A stretch of 64,000 bases of DNA from Convolutriloba macropyga (GCF_964194025.1 NC_134468.1:77686001-77750000); one strand, 5' to 3'; positions 1 through 12,300 are shown, counted from the stretch's first letter. Numbers and translations: made by a program. Notes: generated from the sequence alone by a model not told the origin.

Positions 1-146
1 GTTGTGTCGATTTCTAACCTAATTGAAGTTATGACTTAAACTAGAAAAATAGACGGCCAATGTACCTTTAATCCTATCAACGATTTTTCAAATAAAACAG
101 AAGAAGGAAATTGTTCCCCTGTTCTACCCTTTTGATCTAAAATCAT

Positions 147-151
147 AAAAA
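147..151 (-). terminator. RNA polymerase III oligo-T terminator (T5) after the type A tRNA, present in every ~535-bp unit
   Basis: The minus strand reads ...TGGTCGCA ATTTTT directly after the discriminator base. Confidence 0.6.
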
Positions 152-152
152 T

Positions 153-225
153 TGCGACCAGTGAGTCTCGAACTCACGTCCTTAAGATTACGAGACTTAC
201 GCGCTGCCGACTTCGCCATGGTCGC
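153..225 (-). tRNA. tRNA-Met-derived gene with anticodon CGT (Thr-reading), type A
   Basis: Minus strand reads GCGACCA TG GCGA AGTCGGCA GCGC G TAAGT CT CGT AA TCTTA AGGAC GTGAG TTCGAGA CTCAC TGGTCGC A. The acceptor and T stems pair fully, U33 and the B box are intact, and a T5 run follows. Confidence 0.6.
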
Positions 226-686
226 GGAGTTCAATACGTTACTGCCTCTCTTTTTTTAAAAAAAGTGGTAGCGTATTTTTCTGATGTAATGCAAGTCTTA
301 AGTTAAGTCTGAAATCGAAACAGCTCAGCCATTTCAAACTTTTTACCTTCAAATTTTAATGTTTTTGCTATGATAGACTTGAGGTATCTATTTTAGAGTG
401 AAAATTCTGAGACCAAAATACGAGCCGATTGTCAACATTTTAAAATCAACACTTCGGACAAATGATAGCCAAAACCCTATAATTTGAGCACTGAAAACTT
501 GAAATTATTGAGTTGTGTCAATTTCTTTGGCTGAGTTGTGCCGATTTCGAAACTAATTGAAGTTATGACTAAAACTAGAAAAATAGACGGCCAATCTAAG
601 TTTAATCCTATCAACGTTTTTTCAAGTAAAACAGGAGCAGGAAATTGTTCCCCTGTTTTACCCTTTTGATCTTAAATCATAAAAAT

Positions 687-759
687 TGCGACCAGTGAGT
701 CTCGAACTCACGTCCTTAAGATTACGAGACTTACGCGCTGCCGACTTTGCCATCGTCGC
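687..759 (-). pseudogene. tRNA-Met-derived copy with CGT anticodon, type B (also 2294-2366 and 5501-5573)
   Basis: The 5' end GCGACGA TG GCAA gives G6.G67 and A12.C23 mismatches. The anticodon loop is CT CGT AA. Confidence 0.65.
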
Positions 760-1223
760 GGAGTTGAATTAGATACTGCCTCTTTTTTTAAAAAAAAAAA
801 TGTGGTAGTGTATTTTTCTGATATAATTCAAAACTTTAGTTAAGTCTGAAATCGAAATAGCTCAGCAACTTCATACTTATTACGTTCAAATTATAGGGTT
901 TTTGCTATCATAGTCTTGAGGTATCTTTTTTAGAGTGAACATTCTGAGACCAAAATACGAGCCGATTGTCAACGTTTTAAAATCAACTTTTCGGACAGGT
1001 GATAGCCAAAACCCTATAGTTTGAGCACTGAAAACTTCAAATTATTGAGTTAAGTCGATTTCTTTTGCTGAGTTGTGTTGATTTCTAACCTAATTGAAGT
1101 TATGACTAAAACTTGAAAAATTGACGGCCAATCTAAGTTTAATCCTATCAACGATTTTTCAAATAAAACAGAAGCAGGAAATTGTTCCCCTGTTCTACCC
1201 TTTTGATCTAAAATCATAAAAAT

Positions 1224-1296
1224 TGCGACCAGTGAGTCTCGAACTCACGACCTTAAGAATATGAGACTTACGCGCTGCAGACTTCGCCATGGTCGC
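1224..1296 (-). pseudogene. tRNA-Met(CAT) copy, type C (also at 2832, 3368, 4434 and 6037)
   Basis: The cloverleaf and CAT anticodon are retained, but the D-loop GG is changed (AGTCTGCA) and A38 is T. Confidence 0.6.
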
Positions 1297-1759
1297 GGAG
1301 TTGAATAAGTTCTTGCCTCCTTTTTTTAAAGAAAAAAGTGGTTGCGTATTTTTCTGATGTAATTCAAATCTTCAGTTAAGTCTGAAATCGAAACAGCTCA
1401 GCAATTTCAAACTTTTTATGTTCAAATTTTAGGGTTTTTGCTATTATTGACTTGAGGTATCTATTATAGAGTGAACATTCTGAGACCAAAATACGAGCCG
1501 ATTTTCAACAATTTGAAATTAACATTTCGGACAGGTGATAGCCAAAACCCTATAGTTTAAGCATTGAAAACTTCAAATTCCTGAGTTAAGTCGATTTCTT
1601 TTGCTGAGTTGTGTCGGTTTCTAACCTAATTGAAGTTATGACTAAAACTAGAAAAATAGACGGCCAATGTACCTTTAATCCTATCAACGATTTTTCAAAT
1701 AAAACAGAAGAAGGAAATTGTTCCCCTGTTCTACCCTTTTGATCTAAAATCATAAAAAT

Positions 1760-1832
1760 TGCGACCAGTGAGTCTCGAACTCACGTCCTTAAGATTACGA
1801 GACTTACGCGCTGCCGACTTCGCCATGGTCGC
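1760..1832 (-). tRNA. tRNA-Met-derived gene with anticodon CGT, type A
   Basis: Same sequence as 153-225. Confidence 0.6.
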
Positions 1833-3900
1833 GGAGTTCAATACGTTACTGCCTCTCTTTTTTTAAAAAAAGTGGTAGCGTATTTTTCTGATGTAATGCA
1901 AGTCTTAAGTTAAGTCTGAAATCGAAACAGCTCAGCCATTTCAAACTTTTTACCTTCAAATTTTAATGTTTTTGCTATGATAGACTTGAGGTATCTATTT
2001 TAGAGTGAAAATTCTGAGACCAAAATACGAGCCGATTGTCAACATTTTAAAATCAACACTTCGAACAAATGATAGCCAAAACCCTATAATTTGAGCACTG
2101 AAAACTTGAAATTATTGAGTTGTGTCAATTTCTTTGGCTGAGTTGTGCCGATTTCGAAACTAATTGAAGTTATGACTAAAACTAGAAAAATAGACGGCCA
2201 ATCTAAGTTTAATCCTATCAACGTTTTTTCAAGTAAAACAGGAGCAGGAAATTGTTCCCCTGTTTTACCCTTTTGATCTTAAATCATAAAAATTGCGACC
2301 AGTGAGTCTCGAACTCACGTCCTTAAGATTACGAGACTTACGCGCTGCCGACTTTGCCATCGTCGCGGAGTTGAATTAGATACTGCCTCTTTTTTTTTAA
2401 AAAAAAAATGTGGTAGTGTATTTTTCTGATATAATTCAAAACTTTAGTTAAGTCTGAAATCGAAACAGCTCAGCAACTTCATACTTATTACGTTCAAATT
2501 ATAGGGTTTTTGCTATCATAGTCTTGAGGTATCTTTTTTAGAGTGAACATTCTGAGACCAAAATACGAGCCGATTGTCAACGTTTTAAAATCAACTTTTC
2601 GGACAGGTGATAGCCAAAACCCTATAGTTTGAGCACTGAAAACTTCAAATTATTGAGTTAAGTCGATTTCTTTTGCTGAGTTGTGTTGATTTCTAACCTA
2701 ATTGAAGTTATGACTAAAACTAGAAAAATTGACGGCCAATCTAAGTTTAATCCTATCAACGATTTTTCAAATAAAACAGAAGCAGGAAATTGTTCCCCTG
2801 TTCTACCCTTTTGATCTAAAATCATAAAAATTGCGACCAGTGAGTCTCGAACTCACGACCTTAAGAATATGAGACTTACGCGCTGCAGACTTCGCCATGG
2901 TCGCGGAGTTGAATAAGTTCTTGCCTCCTTTTTTTAAAGAACAAAGTGGTTGCGTATTTTTCTGATGTAATTCAAATCTTCAGTTAAGTCTGAAATCGAA
3001 ACAGCTCAGCAATTTCAAACTTTTTATGTTCAAATTTTAGGGTTTTTGCTATTATTGACTTGAGGTATCTATTATAGAGTGAACATTCTGAGACCAAAAT
3101 ACGAGCCGATTTTCAACAATTTGAAATTAACATTTCGGACAGGTGATAGCCAAAACCCTATAGTTTAAGCATTGAAAACTTCAAATTCCTGAGTTAAGTC
3201 GATTTCTTTTGCTGAGTTGTGTCGGTTTCTAACCTAATTGAAGTTATGACTAAAACTGGAAAAATAGACGGCCAATCTAAGTTTAATCCTATCAACGATT
3301 TTTCAAATAAAACAGAAGCAGGACATTGTTCCCCTGTTCTACCCTTTTGATCTAAAATCATAAAAATTGCGACCAGTGAGTCTCGAACTCACGACCTTAA
3401 GAATATGAGACTTACGCGCTGCAGACTTCGCCATGGTCGCGGAGTTGAATAAGTTCTTGCCTCCTTTTTTTAAAGAAAAAAGTGGTTGCGTATTTTTCTG
3501 ATGTAATTCAAATCTTCAGTTAAGTCTGAAATCGAAACAGCTCAGCAATTTCAAACTTTTTATGTTCAAATTTTAGGGTTTTTGCTATTATTGACTTGAG
3601 GTATCTATTATAGAGTGAACATTCTGAGACCAAAATACGAGCCGATTTTCAACAATTTGAAATCAACATTTCGGACAGGTGATAGCCAAAACCCTATAGT
3701 TTAAGCATTGAAAACTTCAAATTCCTGAGTTAAGTCGATTTCTTTTGCTGAGTTGTGTCGGTTTCTAACCTAATTGAAGTTATGACTAAAACTAGAAAAA
3801 TAGACGGCCAATGTACCTTTAATCCTATCAACGATTTTTCAAATAAAACAGAAGGAAATTGTTCCCCTGTTCTACCCTTTTGATCTAAAATCATAAAAAT

Positions 3901-3973
3901 TGCGACCAGTGAGTCTCGAACTCACGTCCTTAAGATTACGAGACTTACGCGCTGCCGACTTCGCCATGGTCGC
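3901..3973 (-). tRNA. tRNA-Met-derived gene with anticodon CGT, type A
   Basis: Same sequence as 153-225. Confidence 0.6.
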
Positions 3974-4966
3974 GGAGTTCAATACGTTACTGCCTCTCTT
4001 TTTTAAAAAAAGTGGTAGCGTATTTTTCTGATGTAATGCAAGTCTTAAGTTAAGTCTGAAATCGAAACAGCTCAGCCATTTCAAACTTTTTACCTTCAAA
4101 TTTTAATGTTTTTGCTATGATAGACTTGAGGTATCTATTTTAGAGTGAAAATTCTGAGACCAAAATACGAGCCGATTGTCAACATTTTAAAATCAACACT
4201 TCGGACAAATGATAGCCAAAACCCTATAATTTGAGCACTGAAAACTTGAAATTATTGAGTTGTGTCAATTTCTTTGGCTGAGTTGTGCCGATTTCGAAAC
4301 TAATTGAAGTTATGACTAAAACTAGAAAAATAGACGGCCAATCTAAGTTTAATCCTATCAACGTTTTTTCAAGTAAAACAGGAGCAGGAAATTGTTCCCC
4401 TGTTTTACCCTTTTGATCTTAAATCATAAAAATTGCGACCAGTGAGTCTCGAACTCACGACCTTAAGAATATGAGACTTACGCGCTGCAGACTTCGCCAT
4501 GGTCGCGGAGTTGAATAAGTTCTTGCCTCCTTTTTTTAAAGAAAAAAGTGGTTGCGTATTTTTCTGATGTAATTCAAATCTTCAGTTAAGTCTGAAATCG
4601 AAACAGCTCAGCAATTTCAAACTTTTTATGTTCAAATTTTAGGGTTTTTGCTATTATTGACTTGAGGTATCTATTATAGAGTGAACATTCTGAGACCAAA
4701 ATACGAGCCGATTTTCAACAATTTGAAATTAACATTTCGGACAGGTGATAGCCAAAACCCTATAGTTTAAGCATTGAAAACTTCAAATTCCTGAGTTAAG
4801 TCGATTTCTTTTGCTGAGTTGTGTCGGTTTCTAACCTAATTGAAGTTATGACTAAAACTAGAAAAATAGACGGCCAATGTACCTTTAATCCTATCAACGA
4901 TTTTTCAAATAAAACAGAAGGAAATTGTTCCCCTGTTCTACCCTTTTGATCTAAAATCATAAAAAT

Positions 4967-5039
4967 TGCGACCAGTGAGTCTCGAACTCACGTCCTTAAG
5001 ATTACGAGACTTACGCGCTGCCGACTTCGCCATGGTCGC
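4967..5039 (-). tRNA. tRNA-Met-derived gene with anticodon CGT, type A
   Basis: Same sequence as 153-225. Confidence 0.6.
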
Positions 5040-6571
5040 GGAGTTCAATACGTTACTGCCTCTCTTTTTTTAAAAAAAGTGGTAGCGTATTTTTCTGATG
5101 TAATGCAAGTCTTAAGTTAAGTCTGAAATCGAAACAGCTCAGCCATTTCAAACTTTTTACCTTCAAATTTTAATGTTTTTGCTATGATAGACTTGAGGTA
5201 TCTATTTTAGAGTGAAAATTCTGAGACCAAAATACGAGCCGATTGTCAACATTTTAAAATCAACACTTCGGACAAATGATAGCCAAAACCCTATAATTTG
5301 AGCACTGAAAACTTGAAATTATTGAGTTGTGTCAATTTCTTTGGCTGAGTTGTGCCGATTTCGAAACTAATTGAAGTTATGACTAAAACTAGAGAAATAG
5401 ACGGCCAATCTAAGTTTAATCCTATCAACGTTTTTTCAAGTAAAACAGGAGCAGGAAATTGTTCCCCTGTTTTACCCTTTTGATCTTAAATCATAAAAAT
5501 TGCGACCAGTGAGTCTCGAACTCACGTCCTTAAGATTACGAGACTTACGCGCTGCCGACTTTGCCATCGTCGCGGAGTTGAATTAGATACTGCCTCTTTT
5601 TTTTAAAAAAAAATGTGGTAGTGTATTTTTCTGATATAATTCAAAACTTTAGTTAAGTCTGAAATCGAAACAGCTCAGCAACTTCATACTTATTACGTTC
5701 AAATTATAGGGTTTTTGCTATCATAGTCTTGAGGTATCTTTTTTAGAGTGAACATTCTGAGACCAAAATACGAGCCGATTGTCAACGTTTTAAAATCAAC
5801 TTTTCGGACAGGTGATAGCCAAAACCCTATAGTTTGAGCACTGAAAACTTCAAATTATTGAGTTAAGTCGATTTCTTTTGCTGAGTTGTGTTGATTTCTA
5901 ACCTAATTGAAGTTATGACTAAAACTAGAAAAATTGACGGCCAATCTAAGTTTAATCCTATCAACGATTTTTCAAATAAAACAGAAGCAGGAAATTGTTC
6001 CCCTGTTCTACCCTTTTGATCTAAAATCATAAAAATTGCGACCAGTGAGTCTCGAACTCACGACCTTAAGAATATGAGACTTACGCGCTGCAGACTTCGC
6101 CATGGTCGCGGAGTTGAATAAGTTCTTGCCTCCTTTTTTTAAAGAAAAAGTGGTTGCGTATTTTTCTGATGTAATTCAAATCTTCAGTTAAGTCTGAAAT
6201 CGAAACAGCTCAGCAATTTCAAACTTTTTATGTTCAAATTTTAGGGTTTTTGCTATTATTGACTTGAGGTATCTATTATAGAGTGAACATTCTGAGACCA
6301 AAATACGAGCCGATTTTCAACAATTTGAAATTAACATTTCGGACAGGTGATAGCCAAAACCCTATAGTTTAAGCATTGAAAACTTCAAATTCCTGAGTTA
6401 AGTCGATTTCTTTTGCTGAGTTGTGTCGGTTTCTAACCTAATTGAAGTTATGACTAAAACTGGAAAAATAGACGGCCAATCTAAGTTTAATCCTATCAAC
6501 GATTTTTCAAATAAAACAGAAGCAGGACATTGTTCCCATGTTCTACCTTTTTGATCTAAAATCATAAAAAT

Positions 6572-9500
6572 TGCAACCAGTGAGTCTCGAACTCACGACC
6601 TTAAGAATATGAGACTTACGCGCTGCCAACTTCGCCATGGTCGCGGAGATGCATAAATTACTGCCTCTTTTTTTAAAAAAAAATTGGTATTGTATTTTTC
6701 TGATGTAATTCGTAACTTCAGTTAAGTCTGTAATCAAAACAACTCAGCAATTTCAAACTTTTTACATTCAAGTTTTAGGGATTTTGCTACCATAGACTTG
6801 AGGTATCTATTTTAGAGTGAACATTCTGAGATTAAAATACGAGCCGATTGTCATCAATTTGAAATTAACATTTCGGAAAGGTGATAGCCAAAACCCTATA
6901 GTTTGAGCACTGAAAACTTCAAATTCCTGAGTTAGGTCGATTTCTTTTGCTGAGTTGTGTCGATTTCTAACCTAACTGAAGTTTTTCTATCAACGATTTT
7001 TCAAATAAACGAAAAGCAGGAAATTGTTCCCCTGCTGGATCCTTTTGCAGTCGACAGCACGTAAGTTTCATAATCTTATTGTTGCAAGTTCGCGCTTCAC
7101 TAGTCCAAAACTTTTTCATTTTAATTCTAACATTCACTAGTCAGGAGAGTAACTAGCTAAGATTTGATAAATGTGTTTTTGTTCCTGCGATGATCTTTCA
7201 CCATAAAGCAAAGAAGATTTTAATTGTTCTATACTCAGCCCAGTTGTAATATTAGAGTTAGTTTTTTTGGTTATCTAAGCCGGCGGCAACTCGTAGCAGT
7301 TCCGATGCAAAAATTGATTCAGAAAATTGATAAGAAATTTCGGTCAATCAGACTAAATAGTTCTCCAAGTTGTTTTTATGTCTCCCTAATATGTCAATGT
7401 TAAAATTTTTACGTTATGATTCTTATTATTTTCGTTTTCAGACAATATTTTGCAAAAATTGCGCCCCTGAAGCTACAAGATAATAAATTGATATATGAGT
7501 ATTAGAATTAGAATCATAAAGTTTGCGACGAATGAGGCTCGAAATCACGACCCTAAGATTATGAGACTTACCCACTGCCGACTGGGTCATGGTCGCGCAG
7601 GTGAAGACATTATAATCTCTTTTTTGAAAAAAAATGCTAGTGAAGTCATCAGAAACCGAAACAACTCAATAGTTTCAAGTGTTTACGTTCAAATTTTAGG
7701 TTTTTGCTATCATGGATTTGAGGAATTTATTTTAGAGTGTGAAGATTCTGAGACGAAAATACAAGCCGATTGTAAACATTTAAAAATCAGAATTTCGGAC
7801 ACATGATAGCAAAAACACTATTGTTGGAACACTGAAAACTTGAAATTTCTGAGTTGTGTCGATTTCTTTTGCTGAGTTGTGTCGATTTCTAACCTAATTG
7901 ATGTTATGACTAAAACTGGAAAAATAGACGGCCAATCTAAGTTTAATCCTATCAACGATTTTTCAAATAAAACAGAAGCAGGAAATTGTTCCCCTGTTTT
8001 TCCCTTTTGATCTAAAATCATAAAAATTGCGACCAGTGAGTCTCGAACTCACGACCTCAAGAATATGAGACTTACGCGGCGCTGCCAACTTCGCCATGGT
8101 CGCGGAGATGAATAAGTTACTGCCTTTTAAAAAAAAATGGTATTGTATTTTTCTGATGTAATTCATAACTTCAGTTAAGTCTGTAATCGAAACAACTCAG
8201 CATTTTCAAACTTTTTACGTTCAAGTTTTAGGGTTTTCGCTATCATAGACTTGAGGTATCTATTTTAGAGTTAACATTCTGAGACCAAAATACGAGCCGA
8301 TTGTCAACAAATTAAAATCAACATTTCGGACAGGTGATAGCCAAAACCTTATAGTTTGAGCACTGAAAACTTCAATTTCCTGAGTTAAGTCGATTTCTTT
8401 TGCTGAGTTGTGTCGATTTCTAACCTCACTGAAGTTTTTCTATCAACGATTTTTCAAATAAACGAAAAGCAGGAAATTGTTCCCCTGCTGGATCCTTTTG
8501 CAGTCGACAGCACGTAAGTTTCAAAATCTTATTGCTGTAAGTTTGCGCTTCACTAGTCGGAAACTTTTTCATTTCAATTCTAACATTCACTAGTTAGGAG
8601 AGTAACTAGCTAAAGTTTGATAAATGTGTTTTTGTTCCTGCGATGATCTTTAACCATATAGCAAAGAAGATTTTAATTGTTCTATACTCAGCCCAGTTGT
8701 AATATTAGAGTTAGTTTTTTTGGTTATCTAAGCCGGCGGCAACTCGTAGCAGTTCCGATGCAAAAATTGATTCAGAAAATTGATAAGAAATTTCGGTCAA
8801 TCAGACTAAATGGTTCTCCAAGTTGTTTTTATGTCTCCCTAATATGTCAATGTTAAAATTTTTACGTTATGATTCTTATTATTTTCGTTTTCAGACAATA
8901 TTTTGCAAAAATTGCGCCCCTGAAGCTACAAGATAATAAATTGATATATGAGTATTTGATTTAGAATCATAAAGTTGGCGACCAATGAGGTTCGAAATCA
9001 CGACCCTAAGATTATGAGGTTTACCCTCTGCCGACTGGGTCATGGTGGCGCAGGTGAAGAAATTACTATCTTTTTTTTTTGAAAAAAATGCAAGTGAAGT
9101 CATCAGAAACCGAAACAACTCAATAGTTTCAAGTTTTTACGTTTAAATTTTAGGTTTTTGCTATCATAGATTTGAGGTGTTTGTTTTAGAGTGAACATTC
9201 TGGGACCAAACTAAGAGCCGATTGTCAACATTTTAAAATCAACGCTTTGGACACATGATAGCCAAACCCCTGTAATTTGAGCACTGAAAACTTCAAATTC
9301 CTGAGTTAAGTCGATTTCTTTTGCTGAGTTGTGTCGATTTCTAACCTAATTGATGTTATGACTAAAACTGGAAAAATAGACGGCCAATCTAAGTTTAATC
9401 CTATCAACGATTTTTCAAATAAAACAGAAGCAGGAAATTGTTCCCCTGTTTTTCCCTTTTGATCTAAAATCATAAAAATTGCGACCAGTGAGTCTCGAAA

Positions 9501-12300
9501 TCACGACCTCAAGAATATGAGACTTATGCGGCGCTGCCAACTTCGCCATGGTCGCGGAGATGAATAAGTTACTGCCTTTTTTTTAAAAAAAAATGGTATT
9601 GTATTTTTCTGATGTAATTCATAACTTCAGTTAAGTCTGTAATCGAAACAACTCAGCATTTTCAAACTTTTTACGTTCAAGTTTTAGGGTTTTTGCTATC
9701 ATAGACTTGAGGTATCTATTTTAGAGTTAACATTCCGAGACCAAAATACGAGCCGATTGTCAACCAATTAAAATCAACATTTCGGACAGGTGATAGCCAA
9801 AACCCTATAGTTTGAGCACTGAAAACTTAATTTCCTGAGTTAAGTCGATTTCTTTTGCTGAGTTGTGTCGATTTCTAACCTTACTGAAGTTTTTCTATCA
9901 ACGATTTTTCAAATAAACGAAAAGCAGGAAATTGTTCTCCTGCTGGATCCTTTTGCAGTCGACAGCACGTAAGTTTCAAAATCTTATTGCTGTAAGTTTG
10001 CGCTTCACTAGTCGGAAACTTTTTCATTTCAATTCTAACATTCACTAGTCAGGAGAGTAACTGGCTAAAATTTGATAAATGTGTTTTTGTTCCTGCGATG
10101 ATCTTTAACCATATAGCAAAGAAGATTTTAATTGCTCTATACTCAGCCCGGTTGTAATATTAGAGTTAGTTTTTTTGTTTATCTAAGCCGGCGGCAACTC
10201 GTAGCAGTTCCGATGCAAAAATTGATTCAGAAAATTGATAAGAAATTTCGGTCAATCAGACTAAATAGTTCTCCAAGTTGTTTTTATGTCTCTCTAATAT
10301 GTCAATGTTAAAATTTTTACGTTATGATTCTTATTATTTTCGTTTTCAGACAATATTTTGCAAAAATTGCGCCCCTGAAGCTACAGGATAATAAATTGAT
10401 ATATGAGTATTTGATTTAGAATCATAAAGTTGGCGACCAATGAGGTTCGAAATCATGACCCTAAGATTATGAGGTTTACCCTTTGCCGACTGGGTCATGG
10501 TGGCGCAGGTGAAGAAATTACTATCTTTTTTTTGAAAAAAATGCTAGTGGAGTCATCAGAAACCGAAACAACTCAATAGTTTCAAGTTTTTACGTTTAAA
10601 TTTTAGGTTTTTGCTGTCATAGATTTGAGGTGTTTGTTTTAGAGTGAACATTCTGGGACCAAACTAAGAGCCGATTGTCAACATTTTAAAATCAACGCTT
10701 TGGACACATGATAGCCAAAGTCCTATAGTTTGAGCACTGAAAACTTGAAACTCCTGAGTTTTGTCAATTTCTTTTGCTGAGTTGTGTCGATTTCTAACCT
10801 AATTGATGTTATGACTAAAACTGGAAAAATAGACGGCCAATCTAAGTTTAATCCTATCAACGATTTTTCAAATAAAACAGAAGCAGGAAATTGTTCCCCT
10901 GTTTTTCCCTTTTGATCTAAAATCATAAAAATTGCGACCAGTGAGTCTCGAACTCACGCCCTCCAGAATATGAGACTTATGCGGCGCTGCCAACTTCGCC
11001 ATGGTCGCGGAGATGAATAAGTTACTGCCTTTTTTTTTAAAAAAAATGGTATTGTATTTTTCTGATGTAATTCATAACTTCAGTTAAGTCTGTAATCGAA
11101 ACAACTCAGCATTTTCAAACTTTTTACGTTCAAGTTTTAGGGTTTTCGCTATCATAGACTTGAGGTATCTATTTTAGAGTTAACATTCTGAGACCAAAAT
11201 ACGAGCCGATTGTCAACCAATTAAAATCAACATTTCGGACAGGTGATAGCCAAAACCCTATAGTTTGAGCACTGAAAACTTAATTTCCTGAGTTAAGTCG
11301 ATTTCTTTTGCTGAGTTGTGTCGATTTCTAACCTTACTGAAGTTTTTCTATCAACGATTTTTCAAATAAACGAAAAGCAGGAAATTGTTCCCCTGCTGGA
11401 TCCTTTTGCAGTCGACAGCACGTAAGTTTCAAAATCTTATTGCTGTAAGTTTGCGCTTCACTAGTCGGAAACTTTTTCATTTCAATTCTAACATTCACTA
11501 GTCAGGAGAATAATTAGCTAAAATTTGATAAATGTGTTTCTGCGATGATCTTTAACCATATAGCAAAGAAGATTTTGATTGTTCTATACTCAGCCCAATT
11601 GTAATATTAGAGTTAATTTTTTTGGTTATCTAAGCCGGCGGCAACTCGTAGCAGTTCCGATGCGAAAATTGATTCAGAAAATTGATAAGAAATTTCGGTC
11701 AATCAGACTAAATAGTTCTCCAAGTTGTTTTTATGTCTCCCTAATATGTCAATGTTAAAATTTTTACGTTATGATTCTTATTGTTTTCGTTTTCAGACAA
11801 TATTTTGCAAAAATTGCACCCCTGAAGCTACAAGATAATAAATTGATATATGAGTATTTGATTTAGAATCATAAAGTTTGCGACCAATGAGGTTCGAAAT
11901 CACGACCCTAAGATTATGAGGTTTACCCTCTGCCGACTGGGTCATGGTGGCGCAGGTGAAGAAATTACTATCTTTTTTTTGGAAAAAAATGCTAGTGAAG
12001 TCATCAGAAACCGAAACAACTCAATAGTTTCAAGTTTTTATGTTCAAATTTTAGGTTTTTGCTATCATGGATTTGAGGAATTTGTTTTAGAGTGTGAAGA
12101 TTCTGAGACCAAAATACAAGCCGATTGTAAACATTTAAAAATCAGAATTTTGGACACATGATAGCAAAACACCATAGTTGGAACACTGAAAAATTGAAAT
12201 TCCTGAGTTGTGTCGATTTCTTTTGCTGAGTTGTGGCGATTTCTAACCTAATTGAATTTGTGACTAAAACTAGAAAAATAGACTGCCAATCTAAGTTTAC
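6572..12300. repeat. ~1453-bp dimeric higher-order repeat (one long plus one short unit), about 3.5 copies, with degenerate tRNA-Met copies
   Basis: Short-type tRNAs with a 3-nt insertion (gcggcgctg) start at 8028, 9480 and 10933 (spacing 1452 and 1453). Long-type tRNAs lie near 7524, 8977, 10431 and 11879. The private spacer ttccgatgcaaaaattgattcagaaaattgataag occurs 4 times. Confidence 0.88.

Follow-up and report, generated by a model that had tools for sequence, protein, structure and literature searches.

Changing the anticodon of an elongator tRNA-Met from CAU to CGU is a known way of obtaining a tRNA that reads the threonine codon ACG. In Saccharomyces cerevisiae, the A35G mutation in elongator tRNA-Met rescues the deletion of TRT2, the single essential gene for tRNA-Thr(CGU); it arose repeatedly in EMT2 and EMT5 as a suppressor of defective tRNA-Thr(CGU), and proteomics revealed no Thr-to-Met mistranslation in the CAU>CGU mutant (PMC8092322). 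The same change is found in tRNA-Met families of Xenopus tropicalis, Danio rerio, Gasterosteus, Gadus, Strongylocentrotus, and two fungi (PMC8092322), and Met/Thr accounts for 2 of the 30 alloacceptor shifts described in eukaryotes (Rogers and Griffiths-Jones 2014, PMC3923123). Here, we analyze a stretch of 64,000 nucleotides from Convolutriloba macropyga (GCF_964194025.1, NC_134468.1:77686001-77750000), below called the window and numbered from its first letter, in which copies of a tRNA-Met-derived sequence are repeated in tandem and some of them carry the anticodon CGT.

The initial annotation of the window considered the CGT copies a possible recruitment of tRNA-Met as tRNA-Thr(CGU), with the satellite acting as a source of new tRNA identities. 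Our analysis points elsewhere: the CGT copies are probably neutral variants that were amplified within a satellite derived from tRNA-Met, and not a new tRNA maintained by selection. We infer neutrality because the A35G change has a single origin in the copies concerned and was spread by repeat dynamics, one of the two CGT types decayed after the switch, the same change sits in copies that are dead as tRNAs, position 35 shows no excess of hits, and the functional positions of the tRNA are unprotected across the array.

Results

CGT Anticodons on a tRNA-Met Body

The anticodon loop CT-CGT-AA on a tRNA-Met body, on which the annotation was built, was found in all seven of the copies that it named. 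All lie on the minus strand and were called as tRNA-Thr(cgt) by ARAGORN, and they fall into two monomer types, A (153-225, 1760-1832, 3901-3973, and 4967-5039) and B (687-759, 2294-2366, and 5501-5573), the four A copies being identical to each other in the tRNA, as are the three B copies. A third type, C, completes the sub-array of 535-bp monomers to which these belong; it has the anticodon CAT and is found, again on the minus strand, at 1224-1296, with further copies at 2832, 3368, 4434, and 6037.

We scored the copies with the general Rfam tRNA model and compared them directly with the canonical tRNA-Met(CAT) copy of the array (e.g., 22797-22869). Types A, B, and C reached 60.2, 47.6, and 55.4 bits, respectively, in comparison with 66.2–68.7 bits for canonical copies. 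Type A is identical to the canonical sequence at 69 of the 73 positions, the differences being C13A, A35G, T47A, and C60A, and it has the elongator features G1-C72 and T54. Its described intactness was borne out: the acceptor, anticodon, and T stems are paired, G18, G19, and U33 are kept, and the sole stem defect is A13.G22, a mismatch that weakens the D stem. Type B adds C6G and G12A, which create the acceptor mismatch G6.G67 and the D-stem mismatch A12.C23 and raise the number of stem mismatches to three. Type C has lost the GG of the D-loop through G18T and also carries A38T.

The immediate terminator of five T's (T5) reported for type A is present as well. The 3′ trailer begins A-TTTTT, a sequence resembling an RNA polymerase III (Pol III) terminator, directly after the discriminator base (147-152, minus strand), and the whole 535-bp family shares this trailer, including the type C copies with their CAT anticodon. 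In the 945-bp family that makes up much of the remaining window, the trailer reads AACTTT, also in defect-free CAT copies, and only a run of four T's is found ~10 nt downstream (e.g., 22786-22796).

The letters of the CGT copies were compared with contigs from four public runs of one study, the kind of which is unrecorded. No contig had a differing letter at the type A anticodon (positions 1-1760 compared), and a contig of run X4 aligned to 683-747 with 0 differences over the type B anticodon. As the contigs carry the same letters, the CGT variant is probably not an assembly error, bearing in mind that the runs may be the assembly's own source. The contigs are short, their word depths lie between hundreds and thousands in the spacers as well as in the tRNA, and they have branch points leading to other subfamilies. 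Such a pattern is typical of genomic satellite DNA and is uninformative on transcription, RNA ends, or CCA.

One Origin of the Switch in Types A and B

The 535-bp sub-array covers positions 1-7106 on the minus strand, has a period of ~535 bp, and extends past the left edge of the window. Its monomers are ordered A B C / A B C C / A C / A B C C*. Over the full ~535 bp, spacers included, monomers of the same type are 99.3–99.8% identical and those of different types 89–91%, and thus same-type monomers in different units are more alike than neighbors within a unit, which defines the sub-array as a higher-order repeat. Two sequences, recently duplicated, therefore account for the four copies of type A and the three of type B. 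Type A also shares homologous spacers with CAT monomers.

To order the changes in the three types, we polarized them with six outgroup monomers. The outgroups identify the CGT anticodon, and with it A35G, as the derived state. Private changes number 15 in type A, 13 in B, and 15 in C; A and B have four derived states in common, A35G and T47A among them, A and C have two, and B and C none. Given that the sharing of derived states groups A with B, the CGT anticodon of the two types most likely goes back to a single A35G event, which fell on the short branch leading to their common ancestor and was copied thereafter. The amplification that the annotation had emphasized therefore amounts to no more than satellite mechanics, the copies being monomers of a higher-order repeat that trace to one mutation. 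After the switch, type B gained two changes within the tRNA (C6G and G12A), both of them stem-breaking, and type C gained G18T.

The opposite polarity, with CGT ancestral and CAT produced by CpG decay, was also considered and was ruled out, since all outgroup monomers have CAT and the CpG observed/expected ratio of the spacers is ~1. More precisely, the ratio is 0.98 at 33% G+C, and methylation-driven CpG loss is not evident.

The Same Change in Dead Copies

A second CGT subfamily, not covered by the initial annotation, consists of seven copies at 55722-63272 on the minus strand with a period of ~939 bp. These copies score 30–46 bits or fall below the threshold. Besides G33 (U33G) and G35, they have two to three mismatched stem pairs, located in the D-stem and the acceptor; judged by these defects, they are clearly nonfunctional as tRNAs. 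Their background differs from that of A and B, with C13, T47, C60, and spacers of 940 bp, and their A35G is therefore independent of the event ancestral to A and B. Within the subfamily, the copies at 59445, 60384, and 62261 have G41 and those at 58507 and 61323 have T56, sub-variants whose arrangement suggests another higher-order repeat.

Other anticodon-loop variants are scattered in the array. The copy at 18074-18146 has obtained the isoleucine anticodon GAT through C34G and also carries T54A and a mismatch in the anticodon stem, a random change in a damaged copy, and U33A is found at 38006 and 39899.

Substitution Counts in the tRNA Segment

We then looked for selection by counting parsimony changes on trees of the monomers. 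Position 35 changed twice, in comparison with a mean of 1.49 changes per tRNA position; two or more changes were counted at 34 of the 73 positions. With two hits lying near the per-position mean, the recurrence of A35G matches the chance expectation, and as the second family carrying it is dead, recurrence was ruled out as a sign of selection. Taken with the decay of type B, these counts gave no sign that the CGT copies were retained by selection.

Taken whole, the segment evolved more slowly than its spacers. Across all 66 copies, the tRNA columns show 1.49 changes per column (109 changes in 73 columns) and the spacers and flanks 2.58; the corresponding numbers are 0.70 and 1.00 for the 945-bp family (P = 0.0097) and 0.08 and 0.17 for the 535-bp family (P = 0.08). 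The rate deficit is not located where function would put it. Ten positions that are universally invariant were hit (U8, G18, G19, U33, G53, T54, T55, C56, A58, and C61) and together account for 17 changes, or 1.7 per column; the A-box and B-box took ~1.4 and the remaining tRNA positions ~1.5 per column. The A-box, the B-box, and the invariant nucleotides are thus unprotected.

Identity Elements and Predicted Fold of Type A

The annotation had added a conditional claim, that type A, if transcribed, could serve as a tRNA-Thr reading ACG or as a mistranslator inserting Met for Thr. The first option has been established in yeast for the CAU>CGU change in elongator tRNA-Met, and that result favors a Thr reader over the second option. 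The dependence of methionyl-tRNA synthetase (MetRS) on the CAU anticodon, which the claim presupposes, agrees with the literature (PMC9976931). The rule it gave for threonyl-tRNA synthetase needs a correction: G1-C72 and G35/U36 hold in the yeast identity set, but C2-G71 belongs to the bacterial one. The eukaryotic set, as determined in yeast, consists of G1-C72, U3-A70, G5-C68, G35, and U36 (Giegé-Eriani review, PMC9976931). Type A has G1-C72, G35, and U36, as well as A73, whereas its pairs 3-70 and 5-68 are G-C and C-G. The CAU>CGU mutant of yeast elongator tRNA-Met nonetheless functions in vivo (PMC8092322).

Secondary structure predictions for unmodified RNA set type A further apart from the canonical copy. 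For the latter, the cloverleaf at −24.3 kcal/mol practically coincides with the minimum free energy of −24.4 kcal/mol. For type A, the predictions give −20.8 kcal/mol for the cloverleaf and −26.8 kcal/mol for a competing minimum-energy fold. In the competing fold, G35 and A60 allow positions 29-35 to pair with 56-62 in a predicted 7-bp helix; the two segments are perfectly complementary and, for that reason, the predicted minimum-energy fold of type A is not the cloverleaf.

Weighing the Explanations

Several observations weigh against a neutral origin of the CGT copies. Type A is among the best preserved of the damaged copies: its 12 invariant nucleotides are intact, both promoter boxes, A and B, are kept, and the T5 run follows immediately. 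None of its 15 private changes since the switch fall within the tRNA, where ~2 would be expected at the spacer rate, a lack that is not significant (P ~0.13). The tRNA segment is, if only mildly, the slowest part of the monomer, being among the lowest 2% of 73-column windows with ratios of 0.58–0.70 to the spacers, so some constraint or homogenization acts on it. Finally, the yeast precedent demonstrates that an identical change can yield a working tRNA-Thr(CGU) (PMC8092322).

The explanation that makes most of these observations is the one preferred by the annotation, by which type A, recruited from tRNA-Met, is expressed, works as a tRNA-Thr(CGU), and helps to decode ACG. It would account for the retention of G1-C72, A73, C32, U33, and U36-A37-A38 along with the boxes and the terminator, and for the unchanged tRNA of type A since the switch; it also has its parallels in the replacement of TRT2 in yeast, in the tRNA-Met families of several animals (PMC8092322), and in the recurrence of Met/Thr among alloacceptor shifts (PMC3923123). 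However, one event stands behind all four A copies and the sister type that inherited it decayed. A working molecule is hard to reconcile with the mismatch A13.G22 and with a predicted alternative fold that is 6 kcal/mol more stable than the cloverleaf, the acceptor determinants U3-A70 and G5-C68 of the yeast set are absent, and the functional positions are unprotected across the array. We thus consider recruitment unlikely, and very unlikely in its strong form, in which the type A copies are transcribed, charged with Thr, and supply a real share of ACG decoding, making the satellite the maker and amplifier of a tRNA of new identity.

A different explanation for the slow evolution of the tRNA-like segment is that it matters as DNA or as a unit bound by Pol III or TFIIIC. 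It might, for instance, mark a chromatin boundary, give rise to small RNAs, or assist amplification. In all these cases the anticodon would be irrelevant and its variants free to drift. The low rank and ratios of the segment in the window-wise counts are consistent with this, as are upstream and downstream motifs common to different subfamilies. On the other hand, the boxes that such binding would use evolve at nearly the rate of the other tRNA positions (1.4 and 1.5 changes per column), and part of the difference in rate may be alignment noise in the A/T-rich spacers. We regard a role of this kind as quite unlikely. That type A is transcribed but still charged with Met, placing Met at the Thr codons ACG, is hardly credible: the body is that of tRNA-Met by descent and Escherichia coli MetRS can mis-methionylate tRNA-Thr(CGU) through anticodon nucleotides (PMC9976931), but MetRS identity rests on CAU, the yeast mutant had no Thr-to-Met substitution detectable by proteomics, and selection would be expected to act against a mistranslating tRNA present in several copies.

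Architecture of the Satellite

A search seeded with the T-arm identified 66 copies in the window, all on the minus strand and arranged head to tail, and the whole 64 kb can be described as a satellite derived from tRNA-Met. Of the 50 tRNA-like genes called by ARAGORN, 49 lie on the minus strand, and the Rfam tRNA model gave 60 matches. The window has no runs of N, and no open reading frame of at least 110 amino acids was found in its 64 kb. Similarity to the monomer family extends across the window, except for an insertion at 23967-26764 and one stretch of 200 bp. Beyond the 535-bp sub-array, the satellite continues on the minus strand from 7107 to 64000 with periods of ~945 bp and, at 7.5–12 kb, as composite units of 504+949 bp.

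The best copies have the features of a standard animal-type elongator tRNA-Met(CAU), with G1-C72, T54, and a 5-nt variable loop, and for this reason we assign the window to a eukaryotic satellite derived from tRNA-Met. Their Rfam scores are 68.7 bits for the copy at 17146 and 66.2 bits each for those at 22797, 38953, and 46158. Only 6 of the 61 in-register copies (17146, 22797, 38953, 41789, 42731, and 46158) have neither a stem mismatch nor a lost invariant nucleotide, and all six have the anticodon CAT. The array thus consists overwhelmingly of pseudogenes, most copies are decaying, and ~90% are visibly damaged.

The monomer families differ in further respects. Each 945-bp monomer contains, in addition, a decayed segment that resembles tRNA-Met and runs in the opposite direction (e.g., 39479-39554; monomer positions 527-602), so that an inverted pair of tRNA-derived segments is present within the unit; this part is absent from the 535-bp family. 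In the composite region, a 3-nt insertion in the D-arm (GCGCCGCG) has produced 76-nt tRNA-like units at 8028-8103, 9480-9555, and 10933-11008, and these alternate with a more decayed type of copy (7524, 8977, and 11879) in a composite unit of ~1453 bp. The insertion at 23967-26764 is the sole long stretch unlike the satellite. It harbors a 406-bp tandem repeat of 5.5 copies (23965-26200) and, on the plus strand, a tRNA-His(gtg)-like call at 24609-24680.

Discussion

Under the neutral explanation that we prefer, the history of the CGT copies would be a simple one. An A-to-G transition at anticodon position 35 would have occurred once, in the common ancestor of types A and B, and unequal crossing-over would then have multiplied whole units of ~0.5–1.6 kb with their spacers, giving rise to four identical A and three identical B copies. 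Type A is a lightly damaged copy with one D-stem mismatch, and it may be transcribed by Pol III because the A and B boxes and the T5 run are kept. By analogy with yeast, the most likely fate of this transcript would be to receive Thr and to read ACG correctly. Correct reading of ACG would be harmless, and we propose that the variant was for that reason tolerated. Type A is thus a candidate for a tolerated, perhaps weakly expressed look-alike of tRNA-Thr(CGU).

Were the CGT copies functional after all, they would represent a natural case of tRNA identity recruitment in an animal, taking place inside a satellite and multiplied by it. This would bear on the turnover of tRNA gene sets and would make tRNA-bearing satellites a lasting reserve of anticodon variants available to selection. 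The explanation that we find probable has consequences of its own: in large tRNA-derived arrays, anticodon changes can arise and spread by repeat dynamics alone. Whatever their function, the CGT copies will be reported by tRNA finders as additional tRNA-Thr genes, and this calls for caution with tRNA gene counts and with estimates of codon adaptation in this genome.

The Met-to-Thr CGU switch and the logic of its charging are already known from yeast experiments and comparative work, and the array offers a further, putative example of the switch. The closest match is the CAU>CGU switch in elongator tRNA-Met of yeast and animals (PMC8092322): the change is the same A35G, it occurs on an elongator body with G1-C72, and the tRNA-Met family is multi-copy. 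The present copies differ in belonging to a satellite composed mostly of pseudogenes and in having the additional A13, A47, and A60. In the survey of alloacceptor shifts (PMC3923123), the anticodon of another identity was similarly gained by a point mutation, and only Met/Thr and one other identity pair occurred repeatedly. Synteny between species served to define those shifts, whereas the putative shift described here comes from a single window.

As a repeat, the locus resembles the tRNA arrays of Entamoeba (PMC2652664) and the 0.4-kb tRNA-Cys cluster of Arabidopsis (PMC10701932), in which head-to-tail units of a few hundred base pairs carry tRNAs and are likewise amplified and homogenized by unequal exchange. 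Unlike these, the locus has a single tRNA species in each unit, its monomers form a higher-order repeat, and ~90% of its copies are visibly damaged; it behaves as a satellite and not as a working gene cluster. A single anticodon mutation leading to a tRNA-Thr is also the essence of the recruitment described in E. coli (Saks et al. 1998, as cited in PMC3923123). As that citation presents it, the resulting tRNA was functional; the case is bacterial, the shift went from Arg to Thr(UGU), and it was obtained by selection in the laboratory.

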